From assembly GCF_006345805.1 (NCBI RefSeq), contig NC_042999.1, positions 139,810,001 through 139,874,000 of the forward strand: DNA of 64,000 bases, read 5' to 3'. The position numbers and the translations under genes are program-made. This stretch comes from Octopus sinensis. Lineage: Eukaryota. Shown piece by piece: positions 18,801 to 62,169 of the stretch; within the stretch, counting starts at the first letter, position 1; each line of letters begins with the position of its first letter. The notes below the pieces were generated by a model. The model was not told the origin of the DNA, did not search any database, and saw only the letters and a list, made by a program, of their open reading frames with translations.

Positions 18801-19760
18801 TCATACCGATGTTTCTTTAAAGTGTCTTTTCTGCATGACCCTTTTTAAATTCCTTCGCGGTAAGGTAGCCACAGCACCTGTTGATTCTCTGTGTCCTTTG
18901 TGCGGGGAATGTGGTAGCTTTTTTAGTTCTCTCCCCAGAAGAGAGACACTGCTGTGACGTCTGTAATTGCTATCATTTGCTTCTTGCTCCAACAGATGTA
19001 TGCTGTTTCGCCGCTTGTCCACCCATTCATCTATTTCCTTTTCTAAGTGCGACGTCCTTTTACGATGAAGGGACACCCACTTTTCTAAATCCGTTTCCCT
19101 ATTTAAAGCACTCTGCTGACATTGACCAACCCATTTCTCTAAATCCCTCTCCAAGCTAGCAGCATTCTCTCGCTGCTGGATCTCCCATTTTTCAAGGTCT
19201 CTATCCAAACTCACTGAAATATCATGATAGGGTACTGGCCATTTATGAAGAATTCGTTCTTTGTTCAGTATAGCAGTGGGACGCTTACACATCAATTTTT
19301 TAATATTTTTATCCAGACTAGATACTTCTGTGTTCAGACCTTTCCATTTATCTACACCTGAATAGAAAGATTGATTAATTTTCGCCCATTTTTCGAGATC
19401 ACGGTCCAAGCTGGAAGCTACATCATGTAATTGACTAGTTGTCCACCTGTTGAGTGGTTTATGATGAGATGGAGTGCTATGTTGGCTAGCCCACCTTTCT
19501 AGCTCTGCTAGGTGTGAGGCACTCCCATGATGTCCACTGCTCAGCCGTTCCATATCACCCTCAAGCAGGGACTCACTGGTCTCCTGTTGTAACGACCAGT
19601 TTGGGGTTTCCTCTCCAAAAGCAGAAACGGCATCTTGTTGCTGTTCCTCCCACAATGCCAAATCTCCCAGGGCAGACGCCGTACCTTGCAGGTCATCTTT
19701 CTCCTCCTCTTCCAGAGAAGAGTGGCTACGCGGCTGCTCTTGATCCAGTTTCGGACGGCT
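18801..19760 (-). CDS. Terminal coding exon, 319 aa + stop, unknown protein with tandem 18-aa Trp-anchored repeats (SLDRDLEKW)
   Basis: The frame stays open 33 codons upstream of the tracked TTG start (SRPKLDQEQPRSHSSLEEEEKDDLQGTASALGD-LALWEEQ...). It begins exactly after an in-frame TAG that is a splice acceptor (gtgactgtaactttag|AGC), phase 0. 960 nt stop-free in about 35% GC DNA. Confidence 0.85.
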   Translation of the reverse strand, partial: SRPKLDQEQPRSHSSLEEEEKDDLQGTASALGDLALWEEQQQDAVSAFGEETPNWSLQQETSESLLEGDMERLSSGHHGSASHLAELERWASQHSTPSHHKPLNRWTTSQLHDVASSLDRDLEKWAKINQSFYSGVDKWKGLNTEVSSLDKNIKKLMCKRPTAILNKERILHKWPVPYHDISVSLDRDLEKWEIQQRENAASLERDLEKWVGQCQQSALNRETDLEKWVSLHRKRTSHLEKEIDEWVDKRRNSIHLLEQEANDSNYRRHSSVSLLGRELKKLPHSPHKGHRESTGAVATLPRRNLKRVMQKRHFKETSV

Positions 19761-22700
19761 CTAAAGTTACAGTCACACAAGTAACATAAAAGGATACATT
19801 TCCCACAAAAAGCTTATGACAGCTGATCTAACGACAATAACGCATCAGTCACTGTTTTGCTTTAAAGTATAGGGTAGTACGCTTCACTTGAAATATAGTC
19901 AAACCTACAGGCACTTATTTCTCTCCGTCTCTTTATCATAAACCCAAATTACAATATTTTAAAATTGTAAACAGAAGTTACATTTATTAAAAAAAAAGTA
20001 AATGAAACAAAATACTTTGAAATTTCGAGATTTAGATAGAATTTCAGTGAACAAAAACTAAAAGTTCAAGATGAATGTATATAAGCAATGTTCGAAATTA
20101 GACCTCGATTTATTTCTAGTCATTCATTTCAACAAATGACAGCGCATTCCTTTTATCTTTGACTTTTTCAAAATATATCGATTCAACTTCTTATCGATAA
20201 TAAAATGATTTTAAATGCATTATATGTATATATATATCAATGAGCCGTAATATTAATACATAATGCTAGAAACAATTATTAAAGTGTGGTATTAGAAATA
20301 AACGCAAGCAAAAACATTCCGCTCGGGGATTAAAATCGATCTCCGGTTTCAGTGAAAGTAATTTTCTTTTGTTCCAATAAAATTGCACAGAAGGAAATGT
20401 CGCCATCAATTTGGTCAGTAATTCCTGGAAAGCATCCTTTCAATCACTTTCAACAGAACATTGAATATTTTCGTCATATGAAAAAAGAGAAATGTGTTAT
20501 GTCGATGTAAAAATCCAAATACATGTGCACAATATATTGTTTGTTTTCAGCTATTTTCTAGAAGAAAAAGAATGTGGGAAGAATACAAGAAAAGAGAGGA
20601 TTCTATTAACTTCATCGTCCAAAGTGGCTTTGACTAAAATTTTAAAAAATAATCTGCTACAAACCACATGATATAGATTTGCAGGGAGAAAGTACTTCAG
20701 TAGGGTTTCCGGAATTTTCCAATGATCAGTGGGATAGCAGCATCACAGAACTGATTCCTTTTCTTTTTAAATAAGCGGATTCTGTTGAATGTTTCCAAAA
20801 AGACAGCGAATAACAGTAAATTCCATTACAAACAGGGAAAGAAGAGATGAATGAGGGAGAAAAAATGCACCTGTAGTCAGCAGTGTGATTTTATTCCAAT
20901 AACGGTATTGAAAGTAAGAACAACTCTATTTCCAAATACATTCCATTCCTTAGAGCATGTTTTACTAATATTTCATTTACGAAAATTTGGTCCTTGTTCA
21001 AGTACCTTTATAATCGTTTTTCTCATTCTTATATAGAAGCAGTGAGATATATAAACACATATATGGAGCTACATCTTTACAAGCAAATACATTTTAGCTC
21101 ATAACACATCTATATTAAAAAGGAGAGTGATACACGATAGAGAAAGATTAGCTTATGGCGAAAATAAGCTTATTGTTTCAAGCAGGTGCTAGCACGGTTC
21201 ACTGTATTCCATTAATTGTTTGAAACTGTTATTGTTGTCCGAACAGTTATTCCAACTGCCGAAGGTAGGAACGACAGTCTGCTTTTATGATAGTTGTTAG
21301 GAGTAGTGAGCATGCGGTAAATGGCACAGACATCTCCCGCCATACTGCCTGCTGAGAGAGTGAGTGACAGCGAGCGAAGATAGAGAATGAATGAATGAGA
21401 AGGAACTAGTCAGAGAATGAATGAGAGAGAGAGCGATGTACAGAGAAAGAGAGAGAGAGTGTGAAGCTGAGAAAACGCCAGTCGTCCGTGGAAAAACATA
21501 CGAGGTAGAAAGAAATCTATTTGTTGACTGACGAATTTAATGAGAAAATTAATTCAGGATTTTTATTATAAAAAATAAAGTAATGTCGGTGAGTTAGTGT
21601 TTTCTCCTCAGTCAAAAAGACACAGAGTATCAAGAGTGTTAATGTGCAATTGAGAAATAAATTAGAAAAAACAGTGTAAGAGCTACAGCTACGGTAATAT
21701 AATGTAATTTATAACAATCTTGGAAGTTATGAAAAGCAAACTGGAAACTATGGAAAGGAAAAAAAAATTATAGATGAGAAGTGAAGATATTTTAAAAGAT
21801 AGTAGCAAGTGTAATGTTAAGGTTGGATGAGAAAGTGGCCGAAACCCAATTTGTATCGATAACACGAATTATATTTTGTCGATCGGAAGGAGAAAAATGA
21901 ATCTTAGAACAAGCGTAGTTAACGACACTTAATTAGTTAGCAGTAGATCATACAGGGGTATTGGGACGATAACACGCCAATGAGGTGTGCAGGAATCATT
22001 AGGTGCCAACAACTGTGCATACATTATTCCTACACCTTGTCATAAACGGTTGACTGGGGGAACATTCATCAATGTTGGAATTCAATCGTACTGGGTTAAT
22101 GGGGAGGCGCTTACTATTTGCTTGATGCATTACATGTGCAAATCACTGATTAGGTCACGAGTTCGCTCCCTCGTTTCTCATTAAATTCAATTATTTACTT
22201 CACAAGTAGACCAGGTAAGAAAAAGAATATGAACGACGGGGTGCTAGTGCGAACATTGAATCAATGAAAAATAAACTGAAGGTGGTATATATAGGATGAA
22301 ACTCTTTAGATTATCAGTTAACCTCTAGAAAGAGTTTAACAAAATGAAAAATCTGTTCTATTCTCGGTATTGACGAATGAGTGACGACAATGATATATAA
22401 ATAAAATATTTAGTCTGCTGCAACTATATAACTAAGTAAATGGATCTCCATTGTTTTCAACAATTTCTGTGGTTCGATCAACTGAACTACCTATTCATTG
22501 AATAGCGTGTAAGCTACAGAGAAATCCACAGACACGTGTATCTCTGACGTAGTTATCAAGAAGAATCAGCGCAACAGTGTGATAAAGATAGCTCTTGAAA
22601 TAATAGAGTGCATCAGACCGGCTTCAATACAGTTTCCGTCTACCCAATTTCACTTACAATGATTGGGTCAGCTCGAAACATTTGCTAAAGATGTCAGGAA

Positions 22701-31512: not shown

Positions 31513-31686
31513 AACTCAAGTCCGACTCAGGTGGATTCTCAAAATGTTTCTCTCACTCTCACTACGCTGATACTACTTAACTATCTCCCTCTTTGTATCT
31601 ATTTCTCTCCTTCATACGGTCTACGTTATGTATAAGATACCAACAGCAAAACGTTGCCTGTTTAGTTCCCTAGTTTTACAACTCAC

Positions 31687-32128
31687 CTTTTTGGTTCGGC
31701 GTCTGAAAATTGAATCCGTATCTAGCTTGGAAGCGCTCATACCAATTATTACGGAAGCAAAATTCATTGTAACCAAGGCTGTGTGCTACTTCAACAGCTT
31801 TTCGCTTGATTTTGGTGGCATTTAATTGTACTCCTTGACGACGAAGCTGTAAGACCCATTTGTATATGGCCTGTTCGACATCTCTATAAATTGTACTTCT
31901 AATTCGCTTGCGTTGTGACGAGCCATTGTCTGTGAAATCTTCCAAAATACGCGCGCGGTTTTTCATAATAGTTGATAATGTTGTCGCTGGGATACCGAAT
32001 TCGCGGGCGATAATTTTTTTCTTTTTTGTGCCTTCGTCTACGGCACGTATTATAGCCACTTTTGTCTTGAGAAGCAAACCTTTGCGTTTGCAACCATAAG
32101 GCTTCGATTTATTGATACCAGAAGTCAT
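31687..32128 (-). CDS. First coding exon: pipsqueak HTH + CENP-B/Tc5 HTH (Tigger/TIGD-type DNA-binding module), 147 aa, phase-1 donor, no DDE domain
   Basis: KRK.LLLKTKVAIIRAVDEG..KKIIAREFGIPATTLSTIMKNR and YRDVEQAIYKWVLQLRRQGVQLNATKIKRKA...FRNNWYERFQARY. Donor AAAG|gtgagt; the frame stops 3 codons into the intron. Confidence 0.88.
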
Positions 32129-32732
32129 TTTTTTAAAGCTGCAGTCTACTTATCGCTTCTCACTCTACTCACTTTTACTACGTTATATTTAGAATGAAGT
32201 CACACTCACTTCGTTCACTGCCTGCAATGATTGGCCTTAGAGTTAGAGAATTACTACTGAAAGATTTAATGCACTATGTGGCCTCTAGCAGCACTTGAGC
32301 TCTCTAGTAGTAATCGTCTAAACAAACCAATGTATTGTAGCTGCATAGATTTTAGTTAAATAAACCTGATTCAATGAACTAAATTACTAAAGTTTTCATA
32401 TAATAATAACAATAATAAATAACAGAAATACCGGAGGTAGGGGTAAGGATAAAGAGAAGTTATGATAGTATTTAAAGCGCTCGAATTTTGTTAAATTGAA
32501 CGGTGGAATATAAGGAGTTTCCTCATTACTGATTGTGAGTGGATGTGTATTGCGTTGGTCTTACACAATGTCTCGAAAAACAAACAAAAAACGCTTAAAC
32601 AATTTCAAAGGAGGTAGGGGACATTGATTAATAGGAAGATTTATCACTATAAATCAAACAACAAAACCTCGATTTCTTTAGAAAGGAATCTTAACACTGC
32701 ATTGATAAAATGTTATAATGGAATTAATTTTA

Positions 32733-50880: not shown

Positions 50881-51978
50881 TACATTATAGTGATAAATGC
50901 TTGTATATCATGAGTACCACTCTCTAAGTCTCCATGACCAGTGCCTAGTGACAGGCTGAAGCAAGATGTGCAGTAATCACATGAAACTGCAGGTTTTACA
51001 TCAGTGTCCTTCTTTTAGAATAATGCTGTGGCAATACATAGGGATCCCTCATTCCTGATGGTTTTACTGTGTACCTTGATATCAACCAATGGTATTTCTG
51101 TGTCCTGCACTTAGAGCGATTGTCATCATATTTGCTAGTTAACGTACAGATGGGATCCTGACAAGTACTACTACTTCAGGTCAGAGTAGACCAGGAAATA
51201 ATAGAGGTTAAGAAGTGGTTCCACACTCCTAGGAACCCTGAAACTCCCGAACCAGAGCCCCACTACTGGATGCAGTTTAAAGTCATACCCATACATACAT
51301 ACATACACAGATATATTGAACTCCTGTCAGCAGTCCAACACAAACCAGCATACAAAATGGGACATTAAAAGACAGAGATGATGATGAGACATACATGTAT
51401 ATATACACAATATATCTATATCAATTAATCATTATATGCACACGGCTTGCCCAATAGAAATTTTTTTGATTTTGTAACAAAATTCCAATGTTTAGATTGC
51501 TTAGATTTGTGCTTTGTTCATGCTAATAAAATATGCATAGTTGTGGTGTTTTCTTTTGCATTTTTCTGAGATGTACAATGTATATTGGACATAGAATTTC
51601 AATACAAAATTACAAAAATAGTTGCCAAATAGCACAGCAAAGAAATACAATTTTGTAAAATCACAATATCATATGAGCATACAAAATGAAATAATTTCAG
51701 GCACAAAATATATGTGACCTTTAGGACAAATACACTATAAATAATATCTATTTCTGGAGTGAGGTAAGAAGCAGTAGTAAAAGAAGCTATTATTGCAAGG
51801 GAAGAATAATAATCTCTTACTTTTGAAGATGTTTCTTCAGAAGGTAAGAATGTATAGTATATGAATGGAACTTCATATTTAAACATGACTCAAAAGCAAG
51901 TTAGCTATGAAGGGTTTCTTGCTCATGAACCACTTCATAAAAGATATTTATGAAAAATGAAGAAAAAGAGGCACTCAC

Positions 51979-52250
51979 AAGAGTTTCTCTCATACGAATT
52001 AGTTGCAAGCAGCAATGGATTTTCAGGTTTAATATCATGACTTTGAGGTGCTTTGGGTACATTGTTGAATATTGTAGGAACAGCATATCTCTGAAGTAAA
52101 GCCCGCCCCCCTGGCTTGATCATTTGGAAGCAAGATTTTTCAAAATGTTGACTGCATATGTAGGTGTAATGGCTAGGAGTCCAGTTCTGACGGGCAAGAG
52201 CACGGACCCATTTTTTCCACAGACCTGGCTTTTTACGCACATCAGGAAAT
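51979..52250 (-). CDS. THAP-A exon 2 (FPDVRKKPGLWKKWVRAL...YICSQHFEKSCF...YAVPTIF...), phase 2 to 1
   Basis: Acceptor cctttccttttcatttag at 52251-52252, donor CTT|gtgagt. THAP motifs FP, W, C..HF and AVPTIF. Confidence 0.9.
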
Positions 52251-54253
52251 CTAAATGAAAAGGAAAGGAAAAAATAAAAGAGTTATTAAAACAGTGAAAT
52301 CTACAAAGAAAAAGTAAAAGAAAAACGTTTATTATAGTAATATTTGAGGCAACCAGCTATTTAAAATGAACAATTTGAAATCACACCACTGGAACATGCT
52401 AAGTTTATTCAGCTGCAAAAGTCAAGTTAACTTTATATTTTGGGAATGACTAACTATTCATGTTAGAAATAAAATCTCATCTATATGAATTCAAGGTAGA
52501 ATGACTGGATCAATGTTCTCTTTAAATTTTCTCTACCACTGAGCAAAATTATTTTCTATTCAAAGCCAGTGTGCAGCATACAAACTTTAATGTATCATAT
52601 TAACTCTCTTGTAATATAAAGTTTTAAAGTGATCGAAATTAAAACCTTATATCAAAATTTCACATTAACCGAATTTCCAAATACCAGATTAATAATTACA
52701 AAGTTATTTGACTAAACTCCAAATTAATTGAAATAAAGGTAGTGTATTTCAACTGAAATATAGTAAGAAGAGAACTAAATGCACATTGATAAGTTAAAAT
52801 GAACTGCAAGATTTTGATGTGTACAGGTGTACATTAGTGCAGTTGTAATATTGTTAAAGAGCAACTATGCAGCTGCACACTTAAGCAAATTAGCAGCAAC
52901 ATAGTTGGGATCACTTGAATGCTTACCTCTTGTTGTGGACAGAATCTTTTTATTAACGGATTGCACAAGAATTTTAAAGTTTAGTGAGTAATGCATATGA
53001 AAAGACTGTACACAACAGAGTAAATAGCATTTTGACATAGCTGTGTGATCATATTAAAAATGATAGAAGGGCAACATTTGGTTAGTATGAATTAATGCAG
53101 TAAAATCTAGTTACTATCAAACTTTCTCATAACAAAGGCCAGTTTCTGTAAACAAAATCTGAGCTAACAGTGTATACATATAATTCCTATAAATGACAAT
53201 CCACCAGCAACTCAAAAGCTTTTTGATATCATAAAACAGGATATCCAGTGTGTGTACAATTGTCAAGCAACAGAACTTTTAAAATTATTCTGATATAAGT
53301 CAAATAGCTTTTGACAGAAATTTATTGAATATTTCATATAACTTATGTTAAGAGACAAAAATGTTGTTCTTTTAGAGATGTTAATGTTGATAAAATAACC
53401 AATGAACCATCCTATATCTTCTATCACATAGAAAAATCTGCAGAGCAATTAAATTTTATCAGAAACAAACACATCTAAATTTTCTTGAGTATGAGATACC
53501 TTATAAAAAAGCTATCAAACCTCAATAAATTACAAAAATTATTGAATGTTCAAAGTATATTGATAGCAGTGCTGTTATTGAATCTGCATAGATCACAGGA
53601 AATAATAGCGGTGTTGTGGCATCAAAGCGCTAATGAGTTTTGAAGAAAAAAACTAGAAATAATTTACATTGAATTCACCTCATCCACTTGAAACACTTTT
53701 CAAGAAAAAATTGTACATAGGTATATGGTAGAGAAGTAATATTTTAAAATACTAAATTGCATTAATGTTTACTTTGCCTTTCAGTTAGACTCCTCTTCTT
53801 CCAAAAAGGGTTTTATTAAACACTATAAGATATTAGATCTAGAAAAATAGAAAAATCTTTGCTCTGTTGTGCATGAAGAAAAGATGTACAATGAATTGAA
53901 GATTAAGCTGAATTTTGATAAGCTTAAGAAATATGAAGAGATTGAAGATGACAAATAATAATGAAAAGAAAATGAGTAAAGTATTTATAAGCTATTGGTC
54001 ATTAAAACTGGAGATGATGTAAATCAAATAGGAAATACAGGTGCTAAGCATAAAAAACTAGATCTGATAAACAGATTGGCTAAGTCAAGGCAATGTAGAG
54101 AGATCACCCAGAACAATGAAGAGTTAGAACTACAATTAATATATTAACTCCAGTATTTCACACATGTCAGTAATCCAAATGCACACTATACATACAAATG
54201 TAGGCTTTATGATGCATGTCTTTTTAGAGGAAGTTACTTGTAGAAACATAAAA

Positions 54254-56925: not shown

Positions 56926-58464
56926 CTTTCTACAGTGTTTTCATTCAAAGCAATATGGCTGCCCACATATACATCCAAGCATGTCGGCCGCTCACTCAGT
57001 TGGTCGGTGGGTTGGTCGGCTTAGTTCACTGCTGCTGCTGATCCTTAGGATTTTATTCTTCCTTTCATTTTTTTTGTTGTTCTTTCATTCCATCATTTCA
57101 TTCTTTATTGGTTGGTTTATCTTCCATTCGTTTGGGTGTGTTCTTCAAATTCCATCGCTATTTAATTCAGATTGGTTTGCTTGCTTTCTTATGAGAAAAT
57201 TCCAAAACGGAAGTGTAATCGATTAATGAATTATCTTGTATTTTAACCACTGGAATCGACAACTATCAATGAACCAGCGTAACATATTTATTGAATGGAC
57301 CTGCTCGAGTTTATAAACTTTATAAATTGCTTCAAAAATTGCTGCAGAAAACATTTTGGTGAGATTCTTTCTCTCTTTTTTTTTTTTTTTAGGGGTTTTC
57401 AGAGAGACTAATAAAAAATGAAAACGTTCACATTATATACAGAAAAAGCAATTCTTGTCAATCATCAGAACCACGAACACCACATTAATTATATGTGTTC
57501 ACATGAGAGCATCAGTTCATTTGCTGGCATAGTTTTTCATTTCTCGCAGTCAAAATACAAGATAACGAAATACACTTCCATTCGATCTTTGACTACGGAT
57601 CGATTTTTTAATTTTTCAGGGTCATTTCCTTTACAACGAAGAAAATTAACTTTTATTAATTATGAATACACCTCATAACAAACACGTGTGGAGCAAAACA
57701 TTAAAAAAATCTAAGCATCGAATAAGATCATACATAGTGATTCCAACGATCTTAAAATGCTGGAAGATAAAATTCAGCAAACATTTTCCAAGCACTGACA
57801 TAAAAACGCAGATAGGTGGGTATTAAGCCAAAAACATCATTACACTTTAAATCAAATAAAAAAAACATTTCTTTCTCTAGAATGTCATATTTTAGAAAAA
57901 AATATCAACAATAAATATATGATATCTATATTTTCAATCTGATTCATGCTATCATCATCCAAAAGCAAACAATGTTCATATCCTCATGTTCTATTGAACA
58001 GAAATGTCTTAAACCTACATAAGTAGAGCTTTATAGAGGTTGTAAAAACAACTAGGATCCTTCGCAATTCTAACAGAACAGTTACGCAACTGCGACGACC
58101 TTTATACACAAGTGGAGGTGAGGTGAGGATGATTTTTATTAATTTCGAACAGATAAAACGAAAGTAAAGCGGTCAAGGATTTGTTGCAATTACGTCGCCA
58201 TCCTGTTTATTCATTTCACAACACAATAACTACCTAAGAACATTACACGATTGTATAAACAAACAGTTGATTTTACATCAACAATAATTGTTGGATTTTA
58301 TTTTGCTTTTCATAAATCAAAATTCATCCAAAAATCCAATACTTAAAAAAAAACAAAAAAAACATCTAGACTGCAACTACTCGTTATTGCCGAATCAATC
58401 GATTATATTCTCAACTTCAGCAATGTTAGAAATTATCATTATTAATTCGGAAGTGTAAACTCAC

Positions 58465-58696
58465 CTGTAAAAAAATGAACACATGGCATATCGATTCTGT
58501 CAGTACTTTTCTTACCGCGATTAGAACATTTTGTCGGTGGCATATTCCGGAGTTCAGCTTCCTTTTTTCTCCAGTCCCGAACAAGTTTTTCATTAACACT
58601 AAATTGTCTCCCGGCTTCAGAATTATTGGTTTTCAGAGCCAGCATCACAACTTGTAGTTTAAATTTTGAAGTATATTTCATTCGTTTAAAACCCAT
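58465..58696 (-). CDS. First coding exon: Brinker-type DNA-binding domain (pogo/POGK-like), two alternative phase-1 donors (58516 and 58465)
   Basis: KRMKYTSKFKLQVV.LA..TNNSEAGRQFSVNEKLVRDWRKKE.EL..MP.TK..NRG. Donors CGCG|gtaaga and ACAG|gtgagt. Confidence 0.85.
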
Positions 58697-58914
58697 TTTT
58701 ATTCAGATTTGTTTCCGTTTTCGAAGTAGCGCAAATATTTCCCTAACCTGAGTTAATTGATTTCAGTTTGTTGAAAGTTCTATTTAGAAAAAAAGCTAAC
58801 GATTTTTCATCCGTGCAAGGAGAAATCACTTCCTCCTTTCACTGCATCTTTCCGAATGATTTCTAACTTAAAAAAAAAACAATAACAAAAAAAAAAACAC
58901 GAAGCTTGTTTTAA

Positions 58915-61094: not shown

Positions 61095-61306
61095 AATGAG
61101 GTAGAAGGTTCGAAAAATTAAGCATCATTATAGAGATGGTGTTGGCGACACAGTGCTGAGTGAGAGAAGAAAACAGCACGAATTGGATAACTATGAACAA
61201 ACGAAACAAAGCAGAAAGGAAGAAACAATATAGATGGACTACGAATTATGCTCATGAACTGAAGAAAAAAAAAACATAAAGCAGGTTTCATAGATAGTTT
61301 CTTTAC

Positions 61307-61547
61307 CAAGGTAAATCGTTGGGAGATCATAAGGACTTTCCTTACGGTTGTTCCAGAAATGCCTGCTGCACACCCGATGGTCACGACTTATGTGCTTTAC
61401 TTCTTCGTAATTATTTGGGTCATAGCCAGCTCGTCGCATCCACTCATTTCTTAAATGGATATTTTTCCATGGCAGACGGTAGAAGCTAATCGGTCCACCT
61501 TTCTTCTGAAGGGACCGACAGCCTTTCACTATACATTTGGTTGGCAT
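61307..61547 (-). CDS. THAP-B first exon: complete THAP domain in one exon (80 aa), phase-1 donor
   Basis: MPTKCIVKGC...ISFYRLP...RNEW...RVCSRHF...LPTIYL. Donor CTTG|gtaaag; the read-through is low-complexity intron. Confidence 0.88.
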
Positions 61548-62169
61548 TTGTAGCAAACCGCAGAATAAAACCAGTTATGCAAATCAGTGAACCTACATGA
61601 ATTTTTCTAAATTTCGAGATGACATCTGCAACAGCAAAAGGAAAAATACCCTAAAGATATGTCGTGTAAACCACCAATCTACCTGCTTCTGATTGGTTGG
61701 TTGATAGAACTATTTAAACAGCATAGAAACTCACTAACACCCGCATCTTTTCAAAATTCCACCTTAATTTAGAATATATTAAGAATAGCAATCACAAAAA
61801 ATAATTCTTAAAATAGAGCGTATATTTTAATCTACAAGTAGAATTGATAAATTTCCGTTTGTCGCGATTAAATTTATAATGTTCAAATCACAAATTCTTA
61901 CAGAGAGAAACAATGGAAGATATAACAAGTACTTAATGTAATTCTTTTCTTAAGATCACAGAAGGATTGATACATTATTCAGTCGTTAATACACACTAAA
62001 CACCTTACGTAATAATTATGTAATTAAACTGACTGAAACAGATATACCTCACTGAAACTATATTTTTAGGATTGATAAAATTAATAACAAAAGTGCCGAT
62101 GTTCATGCAAAATAATAATAAAAAAAACAATTTTTACAATCACTTCAGTAATCCACTTTTTCAATGCGG

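Follow-up and report, generated by a model that had tools for sequence, protein, structure and literature searches.

Tandem helical arrays in described systems

The described proteins closest to the repeat reported here carry short helical sites in series. Sfi1p and hSfi1, and with them hPOC5 and the Sfi1-like giants of ciliates, carry their repeats in tandem along an extended alpha-helix, poor in proline, that presents equivalent sites one after another, rotated by about 60-65 degrees from each repeat to the next. Two patterns have been given for these repeats, AX12[F/L]X2W[K/R/H] and [F/W/L]X2W[K/R/H]X21-34[F/W/L]X2W[K/R/H] (Kilmartin 2003). The Sfi1 consensus is AX7LLX3F/LX2WK/R and the reversed centrin triad is L8xxxL4xxW1; the Trp-to-Trp repeat length is 23-37 residues, and 33 in most non-fungal eukaryotes. 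Myosin-type IQ arrays also line up serial sites for small proteins, at a motif spacing of 23-26 residues, on an exposed helix that is stable only with its ligands bound, and their motifs are basic. Paxillin-type LD motifs (LDxLLxxL) are short acidic amphipathic helices on a scaffold protein that are bound by helical-bundle domains. The MAP6/SAXO family has an N-terminal cysteine-rich motif 1 and Mn repeats, arrays of helices of about 7-9 residues with a Ser/Thr N-cap, for which the minimal unit signature is [TS]-[TS]-x4-[YF] (Andersen et al. 2024). Vangl1 and Vangl2, four-pass membrane proteins with a Pfam family of their own, end in -ETSV, a canonical class I PDZ motif.

The array encoded at the present locus resembles each of these in part. 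It shares with Sfi1 a Trp anchor, Leu or Phe at -3 and Leu at -7, and would likewise set out equivalent sites in series along a long, proline-poor helix. The parallel with IQ arrays is an analogy, and the IQ consensus IQxxxRGxxxR is absent. Like LD motifs, its motifs start with L-D and have hydrophobic residues at positions 1, 5 and 8; unlike them they have Trp for the last Leu, lack Leu at position 4, come without LIM domains and number 15 copies at a fixed 18-residue spacing as against five dispersed ones.

A constrained terminal coding exon

Within the 64-kb window (the whole stretch of DNA analysed), one open frame of 319 codons on the minus strand begins in phase 0 at a splice acceptor and runs to a stop codon at its 3' end (Table 1). 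The acceptor's own TAG is an in-frame stop upstream of this frame, and the start region of the exon has no conserved in-frame ATG, Met70 being Ile in the relative. An earlier note on this DNA had described an ORF of 286 residues, which is present at 18801-19661, but its TTG start is spurious, a product of listing ORFs in bacterial style, and the frame comprises all 319 codons. Because the acceptor, the stop codon and the polyadenylation signal downstream of it are all conserved in two species, the exon is taken to be terminal; the signal is the sole AATAAA or ATTAAA within 2 kb downstream of the stop. The host genome is that of an animal, AT-rich (GC about 33%) and rich in transposons.

Table 1. 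Features of the exon and its surroundings in window coordinates; residues follow exon numbering
Feature	Position	Strand	Evidence or remark
Coding part of the 3'-terminal exon	18804..19760	-	Open frame, dN/dS, 3-nt indels against L001
Splice acceptor: pyrimidine-rich tract, branch-point-like TGAC/CTAAC, ...ctttAG	19761..19790	-	Sequence; kept in L001
Irregular N-terminal units 1-9, residues 20-174	19239..19703	-	Repeat statistics
C-terminal units 10-15, residues 175-282, each exactly 18 residues	18915..19238	-	Repeat register, hydrophobic moment
Predicted single long alpha-helix, residues 178-280	18921..19229	-	AF2
R-K-R-T-S, residues 233-237, candidate basophilic kinase site in an inter-repeat linker	19050..19064	-	Sequence; identical in P0001
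R-R-H-S-S, residues 267-271, second candidate basophilic (RRxS) kinase site	18948..18962	-	Sequence; identical in P0001
Non-repeat tail, residues 283-315	18816..18914	-	His/Ser/Pro-rich, then basic PRRNLKRVMQKRHFK
C-terminal E-T-S-V, putative class I PDZ-binding motif (x-S/T-x-V-COOH)	18804..18815	-	Sequence; identical in P0001
Stop codon TGA	18801..18803	-	Sequence; kept in L001
Polyadenylation signal AATAAA	18503..18508	-	292 nt past the stop codon; identical in L001

The only known relative is a genomic contig of a closely related species, L001, whose protein (P0001) has 95% amino-acid identity to the exon product. The 319-codon frame is open in both species, the other two frames contain 16-28 stops, and the two indels that separate the sequences are each 3 nt long. 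Nucleotide identity is 93-99% per 150-bp block within the exon, as against about 87-90% in the flanks. The dN/dS ratio is 0.16 overall (Fisher p = 4.6e-9), 0.23 over residues 37-156, 0.05 in the block of exact 18-residue units (residues 157-264) and 0.06 in the tail (residues 265-319). The overall, block and tail values indicate that the exon is coding and selectively constrained, at a conservation depth that is shallow, given one very close relative.

Could the frame nevertheless be non-functional, whether it arose by chance, is a pseudogene in decay or is left over from a transposon or virus? The surroundings are rich in transposon relics, and none of the annotated proteins in the databases searched contains the exon. 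However, a frame of 319 codons has an estimated chance of about 1e-11 per start at the base composition of the window, and this one has been kept in a second species with low dN/dS and in-frame indels alone. The exon occurs once in the window, its relative was seen on just two contigs elsewhere, and Pfam gives it no match to any transposon or viral protein family. A non-functional origin is thus barely credible; as judged from sequence, 18804-19760 belongs to a real protein-coding gene and is its last coding exon.

Register and units of the repeat

The earlier note had placed Trp at 4, 22, 57, 73, 92, 106, 141, 159, 177, 195 and 213 of its 286-residue ORF, and all 11 residues are there, as is every one of the motifs that it listed: SLDRDLEKW (twice), SLERDLEKW, RETDLEKW, LEKEIDEW, LAELERW, LEGDMERL and LGRELKKL. 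Five Trp-Trp pairs stand at lag 18 (p = 1e-5 against random placement of 11 Trp, and 1.2e-4 once the choice of the best lag between 2 and 40 is allowed for). A hydrophobic residue occupies -3 of the Trp in 10 of 11 cases, with 2.2 expected, and the triad hydrophobic-x3-hydrophobic-x2-W occurs five times where 0.43 is expected (p < 5e-5). The relative supports the register independently: the residue called Leu 123, a filler in the proposed series, is Trp in P0001.

The consensus is S-S-L-(D/E)-(R/K)-(D/E)-L-E-K-W, in about 15 units. A hidden Markov model of the unit finds 15-16 contiguous copies across the exon and none elsewhere in the window, a check that is circular because the model was built from the units themselves; no other repeat-bearing segment occurs in the window. 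The proposed 18-residue period holds exactly in the last seven units (residues 157-282) but not in the N-terminal half, where units span 14-19 residues. Units 1-9 end in Trp, or in Leu in two cases, and are joined by linkers of Pro, Gly, His and Ser; unit 9 (residues 157-174) already has exactly 18 residues, which is why the exact run starts one unit before the C-terminal set. Units 10-15 contain the SLDRDLEKW, SLERDLEKW, RETDLEKW and LEKEIDEW cores; two of these units are degenerate, ending in S and L.

The two identical SLDRDLEKW copies differ in five of nine codons, all synonymously. All nine motif positions, the charged ones included, are kept between copies despite the codon differences, and the linkers differ. 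Together with the lag-18 statistics and the Leu-to-Trp difference in the relative, these synonymous differences argue that the repeat is under selection as a peptide, and both the Trp repeat and its register are real on this evidence.

Helix geometry and self-association

AF2, run on an alignment of two sequences (overall pLDDT 57, pTM 0.26), predicts one helix over most of the exact-18 region, with block pLDDT 80-89 for residues 181-260. Confidence is low over the N-terminal units, where the predicted helices are broken at Pro and Gly. Long helices are also an easy default for such sequence. The hydrophobic moment of residues 175-264 has a sharp peak at 100 degrees and is down by a third at 102 degrees; over the same residues L(-7), L(-3), W(0) and V(+1) fall within an arc of roughly 100 degrees. 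Since 18 residues make five helical turns, the Leu/Leu/Trp patches would all point the same way, forming a single straight face with one patch per 27 Å. The amphipathic helix suggested in the earlier note is therefore supported for the C-terminal units, which have both the predicted helix and the moment at 100 degrees, but not for the N-terminal units with their Pro/Gly linkers and low AF2 confidence.

Such a helix is unlikely to stand alone. ER/K single alpha-helix (SAH) domains have a very high, alternating content of E and K/R and few hydrophobic residues, and with about 38% charged residues a helix of that kind would not be stable on its own. Residues 175-264 have 34 of 90 charged (20 D+E against 14 K+R, net acidic) and a regular Leu/Leu/Trp/Val stripe, so a SAH domain was rejected. 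At this charge content the helix would need either a partner or self-association.

Self-association would take the form of a straight, non-supercoiled coiled coil with 18/5 periodicity, in which the repeats are structural and not ligand sites and the core is built from L(-7), L(-3), W(0), +4 and +8. The long predicted helix, the weak charge and the coherence of the moment over 90 residues at exactly 100 degrees are all consistent with it, the core spacing of 4, 3, 4, 4, 3 can be read from the sequence, and the five-position seam (L, L, W, Q/C/H/R, A/A/T/I) could support a straight form. Against it, each repeat places a polar or small residue at two of its five core positions (Q/C/H/R at +4, A/A/T/I at +8) and fills another with Trp, which is bulky and uncommon in cores. 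Charged positions outside the core are also as well conserved between copies as the core positions themselves. The N-terminal units, being variable in length and containing Pro and Gly, could not extend the coil. This straight coiled coil is unlikely, though far from negligible. The canonical heptad form was rejected: the moment peaks at 100 degrees and not at the 103 or so of a 3.5-residue periodicity, and of the five seam positions in every 18 residues, two hold polar or small residues.

Comparison with Sfi1

If the helix is instead stabilized by a partner, each Leu-x3-Leu-x2-Trp site might bind one EF-hand protein of the centrin or calmodulin type, making the whole a Ca2+-sensitive filament like Sfi1. 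The core spacing of the exon motif is that of the Sfi1 consensus and of the reversed centrin triad, the exact-18 region is nearly proline-free, and Sfi1 too forms one long helix with regularly spaced sites and an invariant Trp. The differences are nonetheless considerable. Trp-to-Trp spacing in the exon is 14-19 residues, outside the range of all described Sfi1 repeats, and 27 Å per site leaves scarcely enough room for a two-lobed EF-hand protein. The exon sites would all lie on one side and would not rotate along the helix, and the N-terminal units are split by Pro and Gly. Centrins are acidic, and the units are net acidic as well. The exon has no Ala at -16 and K/R/H after Trp in one of 11 cases; [LF]x2W[KRH] and both of the Kilmartin 2003 patterns have no match in it. 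Pfam gives no Sfi1 match at E up to 10, and the repeat profile misses the Sfi1 chains in the PDB. A true Sfi1-like filament is, on balance, improbable.

Searches for relatives

The earlier note recognised no family for this protein, and Pfam, PDB sequences, Foldseek and exhaustive phmmer searches likewise place it in none. Pfam searches of the whole exon and of three sub-regions gave sub-threshold noise alone (KIF21A-like, GH134 and two DUFs). PDB sequences yielded nothing meaningful against the exon protein and three chance-level matches against the repeat profile; the AF2 model had no Foldseek match in the PDB. A word-indexed homology search returned P0001 as its one match, and exact look-up of the window ORF found no record in the public assemblies searched. 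Two internal-repeat profile searches returned nothing, and they also missed the positive control P0001, to which the same profile gives 202 bits locally. A protein-pattern scan of metagenomes found no match. A two-motif DNA pattern picked out one metagenome contig (L002), whose unrelated Lys/Glu-rich ORF has DFEKW twice, 18 residues apart; it was judged a chance match and rejected. Nothing relevant was found in the literature on 18-residue Trp repeats or on the motif string.

The exhaustive phmmer search returned, besides P0001, one further protein: P0002, a 2266-residue member of the SAXO1-2 family, at E = 6.8e-14. Could the exon encode a divergent MAP6/SAXO protein whose short helices bind the microtubule lattice? 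P0002 carries S-x3-D-Y-x2-W-E with a W-18-W spacing, shuffles of composition and column-permuted controls never matched the native score, and Mn repeats, described as arrays of short interspersed helices, resemble the exon motifs in helix length and N-cap. However, the score is built up from one alignment, about 60 residues long and scoring 2-8 bits, which is counted again for each of 29 near-identical copies in P0002, and one of 300 permuted repeat controls already reaches 62 bits. The minimal Mn signature occurs 29 times in P0002 and not at all in the exon, and Pfam PF05217, which matches P0002 at 1.5e-100, finds nothing at E = 10 in the whole exon or its sub-regions. In the literature the Mn-like motif is rich in Pro and has an F/Y that never varies, which sets it apart from the acidic helical motif of the exon; the exon also lacks Pro-rich inter-repeats. 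Homology to P0002 was rejected as an artefact of repeat summation in the absence of the Mn signature from the exon, and membership of MAP6/SAXO is highly improbable.

Upstream sequence and the nuclear reading

No upstream exon of the gene was found in the 44 kb of the window upstream, where no further protein-like open segment stands out save transposon relics, and Rfam has no match across the window. In the block at 21200-21350, which is 99% conserved, there is no ORF, good donor, Rfam match or significant fold. Two ORFs with THAP domains lie on the strand of the exon (51938-52282 and 61242-61574), among clear transposon relics. The well-formed THAP exon with consensus splice sites at 52250-51981 was rejected as the direct upstream exon, since joining its phase-1 donor to the terminal exon creates a TAG.

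These ORFs bear on the reading towards which the earlier note leaned, a multivalent effector domain. On that reading a nuclear transcription factor, perhaps of THAP type, would carry in this exon an acidic domain for activation or cofactor docking and, at its C-terminus, a nuclear localization signal. Its motifs do unite acidic residues with Trp and Leu, the tail is basic, and THAP ORFs lie upstream on the same strand, the one at 51938-52282 with consensus splice sites. But each motif is as basic as it is acidic (R and K are invariant), a balance seldom found in acidic activation motifs. The THAP domains here sit among relics and the one candidate join fails, and ETSV at a free C-terminus suggests cortical PDZ scaffolds and not the nucleus. 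A transcription factor is accordingly a poor prospect.

The C-terminal tail

The stretch PRRNLKRVMQKRHFK described as an NLS-like tail is present and basic: the 37 residues from 283 to 319 contain nine K+R against two D+E. The nuclear label fits less well than a reading in which this basic stretch leads into a terminal class I PDZ ligand, ETSV, that the earlier note had missed. These four residues directly precede the stop codon and match the pattern x-[S/T]-x-hydrophobic at what would be a free C-terminus. They are also the last four residues of Vangl1 and Vangl2, with nothing further in common; the Vangl Pfam family has no match in the exon. A motif of four C-terminal residues can also arise by chance. 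R-K-R-T-S and R-R-H-S-S are putative kinase sites, picked out by the general R/K-R/K-x-S/T rule.

A possible docking scaffold

The reading preferred here, at a little under an even chance, is that the exon encodes a rod-like, multivalent, PDZ-anchored helical scaffold for docking. The module would have three parts. The first would consist of about nine short amphipathic helices, each with a Ser N-cap, on flexible linkers of Pro, Gly, His and Ser; in the second, six units in strict 18-residue register would fuse into a helix of about 100 residues (about 150 Å); the third would be a phosphorylatable basic tail with the ETSV end. A small partner domain, the same for all of the nine-residue helical motifs, would dock once on each of them, and a PDZ-domain protein at a membrane or at the cortex would hold the ETSV end. 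PDZ anchoring, docking in preference to self-association and control of the module by phosphorylation are what we infer from these features.

Docking is favoured over a coiled-coil core because the copies agree at every one of the nine motif positions, even at the D/E, R and K that face the solvent, and diverge in the linkers, and because the N-terminal units are of variable length and contain Pro and Gly. The string of docking motifs proposed in the earlier note is thus plausible, in that the nine positions are kept between copies with differing codons.

A more specific form of the scaffold is a filament that binds EF-hand proteins (centrin- or calmodulin-like) or other small domains, is anchored through PDZ at a cortical or synaptic site, is switched by phosphorylation of its linkers and is specific to its lineage. 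This form is a long shot. If true, it would have the closest site spacing known (18 residues, 27 Å) for an Sfi1-like rod, with all sites on a single face, and would be a lineage-specific mechanical or signalling element of what is presumably the cephalopod cell cortex.

If the exon is expressed, a previously undescribed short helical repeat, 18 residues long, Trp-anchored and in exact five-turn register, would join the known tandem-repeat scaffolds. A constrained rod with identical Leu/Leu/Trp patches every 27 Å along a single face and a PDZ ligand at its end would be an unusually clean natural case of geometric multivalency, and the module could serve as a simple system for how spacing controls the loading of partners. 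The locus also suggests that long, strongly constrained coding exons of large, transposon-rich invertebrate genomes are still missing from protein databases.

Exon structure and constraint

We describe the feature as the coding portion of a 3'-terminal exon, which fits it best: a sequence reading places a pyrimidine-rich tract ending in ...ctttAG directly 5' of its frame, and a single AATAAA lies 292 nt past the stop codon. An earlier note had listed a 286-aa ORF here, and that frame is present, but its TTG "start" is an artefact of bacterial-style ORF listing, since the in-frame stop at its upstream limit is the TAG of the splice acceptor itself. The frame stays open for 319 codons; residue 70, where Met first occurs in it, is Ile in the relative described next. 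The ORF has no exact match in the public assemblies searched. Two antisense ORFs over the exon are ordinary by-products of the long sense ORF (see table).

A word-indexed search of 5.8 billion proteins returned a sole relative, P0001, at 94% identity. The 3.8-kb contig that carries it, L001, comes from a closely related species and matches 3.3 kb of the window at 88.7%; because this alignment takes in the flanks, L001 is genomic sequence and not a transcript. Identity per 150-bp block is 93-99% across the exon, with zero out-of-frame gaps and two indels of 3 nt each, and overall 90% in the upstream and 87% in the downstream flank; the acceptor, stop and AATAAA are all kept. Nei-Gojobori counting gives 27 synonymous against 18 non-synonymous changes (dS 0.150, dN 0.024), a dN/dS of 0.16 from a single very close relative (Fisher p = 4.6e-9). 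The ratio is 0.39 (not significant) for residues 1-36, 0.23 for 37-156, 0.05 for 157-264 and 0.06 for 265-319, and the other two frames of the exon hold 16-28 stops. Judged by this comparison with one very close relative, the exon is real and constrained; a non-functional ORF is one of the less likely readings.

Features of the exon and its surroundings (window coordinates)
Feature	Position	Strand	Description
Exon coding part	18804-19760	-	319 open codons from 19760 to 18804, then TGA
Antisense ORF	18881-19159	+	92 aa
Antisense ORF	19514-19789	+	91 aa
Conserved block	21200-21350		150 bp
Pogo/Tigger-type transposase relic	31679-32149	-	matches CENP-B_N, HTH_Tnp_Tc5
THAP exon	51981-52250	-	second part of zinc finger, Pfam THAP positions 21-87, E = 1.3e-11
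Pogo/Tigger-type transposase relic	58445-58702	-	matches Brinker-type HTH
THAP domain, one ORF	61242-61574	-	starts MPTKCIVKGC; Pfam THAP positions 1-61 of 87, E = 1.1e-10

Genomic surroundings

The window is AT-rich (GC 28-41% in 2-kb bins) and abounds in transposon relics (CENP-B/Tc5 HTH, BrkDBD and two THAP domains), besides which it holds no other protein-like open segments; Rfam has no family match anywhere in it. The THAP exon, a well-formed internal one, shares the strand of the repeat exon and has a consensus acceptor, ttcatttAG, and a consensus donor, GTGAGT, in phase 1. Splicing it directly to the repeat exon was rejected, as the phase-1 join creates a TAG. Since the window lacks other candidates, the upstream exons should be small, lie outside the window, or be joined via unrecognised exons. 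The second THAP domain probably represents a fragment of a THAP gene, either P-element-like or domesticated.

The conserved block, some 1.5 kb upstream of the exon acceptor, is 99% identical to L001 while its flanks are at about 87%. It occurs once in the window, all its frames lack an ORF, Rfam does not match it, and its RNA fold is not significant (z = -1.5). It may represent a conserved non-coding element, or else a UTR exon or promoter belonging to the same gene.

Repeat architecture

The tandem Trp-anchored repeat reported earlier is confirmed: on re-reading the exon protein every listed Trp position is correct, the quoted motifs and basic tail are all found, and five Trp-Trp pairs fall at lag 18 (p = 1e-5 against random placement, 1.2e-4 once the best lag of 2-40 is allowed for). 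A hydrophobic residue stands at -3 for 10 of the 11 Trp (2.2 expected), and there are five instances of the triad hydrophobic-x3-hydrophobic-x2-W (0.43 expected). Cutting at Trp (or Leu) anchors yields 15 units with the consensus S-S-L-(D/E)-(R/K)-(D/E)-L-E-K-W, preceded by about 8 variable residues. The claimed "about 14" repeats of 18 residues need adjustment, as units range from 14 to 19 residues and only the last seven are exactly 18. The repeat occurs nowhere else in the window.

Two identical SLDRDLEKW copies differ in 5 of 9 codons, all synonymously, which marks them as old copies whose likeness is due to selection rather than to a recent duplication of the DNA; Tandem Repeats Finder detects no DNA-level repeat in the exon. 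Leu 123 of the 286-aa ORF, an anchor without Trp, is Trp in P0001. This swap and the synonymous divergence both point to selection acting on the repeat as a peptide.

Beyond the repeats, residues 283-319 form a basic tail (9 K+R to 2 D+E) ending in E-T-S-V before the stop, a class I PDZ-binding motif identical in P0001 within a tail block of dN/dS 0.06. The basophilic kinase consensus sites RKRTS (233-237) and RRHSS (267-271) are both invariant in P0001 and are putative phosphorylation targets.

Family searches

Pfam returned sub-threshold noise only, queries of PDB sequences using the protein or a repeat profile yielded no meaningful match, and Foldseek of the model against PDB gave none. Two internal-repeat profile searches also found nothing, but they missed P0001 too (202 bits locally with the same profile) and so had no power. 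Exhaustive phmmer against 1.84 billion representatives found P0001 and one distant match (E = 6.8e-14), P0002, a 2266-aa SAXO1-2 protein of near-identical 69-residue units. Against P0002, the native sequence outscored all composition shuffles, Trp-fixed shuffles and column-permuted repeat controls. Homology was nonetheless rejected: the score sums one alignment of about 60 residues, at 2-8 bits, across 29 copies; 1 of 300 permuted controls reached 62 bits; and the minimal Mn signature [TS][TS]x4[YF] occurs 29 times in P0002 and 0 times in the exon. The exon motif is quite different from the Pro-rich Mn-like motif in the literature, and Mn-like microtubule binding is among the less likely functions. 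The P0002 array of about 29 units is itself unusually large and homogeneous for Mn repeats, with Trp spaced strictly 18 then 51 residues apart.

Two metagenome scans found no relative. A two-motif DNA pattern retrieved a 360-aa Lys/Glu-rich ORF (72-1154 of contig Ga0209636_10384022) in which RRDFEKWEKEK and KRDFEKWEEKK stand at a spacing of exactly 18 residues; we reject it as a relative and judge it a chance or convergent helical motif. With P0002 set aside, the earlier failure to recognise a family holds: the exon is in no recognisable family, and its repeat type is not described in the sources searched.

A helical docking rod?

AF2, given two sequences only (mean pLDDT 57, pTM 0.26), predicts residues 178-280 as one unbroken helix (block pLDDT 80-89 for 181-260). 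For residues 175-264 the hydrophobic moment has a sharp maximum at 100 degrees (0.33, falling to 0.22 at 98 and 102 degrees), and an arc of about 100 degrees takes in L(-7), L(-3), W(0), V(+1) and a few more residues. The proposed geometry, in which 18 residues make five turns, is borne out here, with patches on a straight stripe, one per 27 Å. It does not extend to the N-terminal half, which is predicted with low confidence and where Pro/Gly positions interrupt the helices.

Only 38% of residues 175-264 are charged; judged by what is known of ER/K helices, a lone stable helix is unlikely at that level, so the rod should need itself or a partner. Self-association as a straight 18/5 bundle is a serious rival, albeit a less likely one. 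Against such a core, all nine motif positions, solvent-facing charges included, are kept between copies while linkers differ, and the variable-length N-terminal units with Pro/Gly linkers suit beads on a string rather than a continuous bundle. We therefore favour, tentatively, a multivalent docking rod anchored via the PDZ ligand, partner and anchoring both being putative.

Could the partner be centrin-like? The core Leu-x3-Leu-x2-Trp has the spacing of the Sfi1 consensus AX7LLX3F/LX2WK/R and of the reversed centrin triad L8xxxL4xxW1, and Sfi1 is likewise one long helix carrying serial sites. However, successive Trp lie 14-19 residues apart here but 23-37 apart in Sfi1, both published Sfi1 search patterns give 0 matches in the exon, K/R/H follows Trp in only 1 of 11 cases where Sfi1 has K/R, the units are net acidic, and Pfam and PDB-sequence profiles make no connection. 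The exon repeat was accordingly rejected as an Sfi1 repeat. The helix may still work in an Sfi1-like way, with a small partner loaded per site, although 27 Å per site leaves scant space for a two-lobed EF-hand protein; centrin-like loading is less likely than the docking rod, as is a transcription factor's acidic effector domain. The exon repeat would take its place among helical tandem-repeat docking scaffolds, as a type without prior description in the sources searched.
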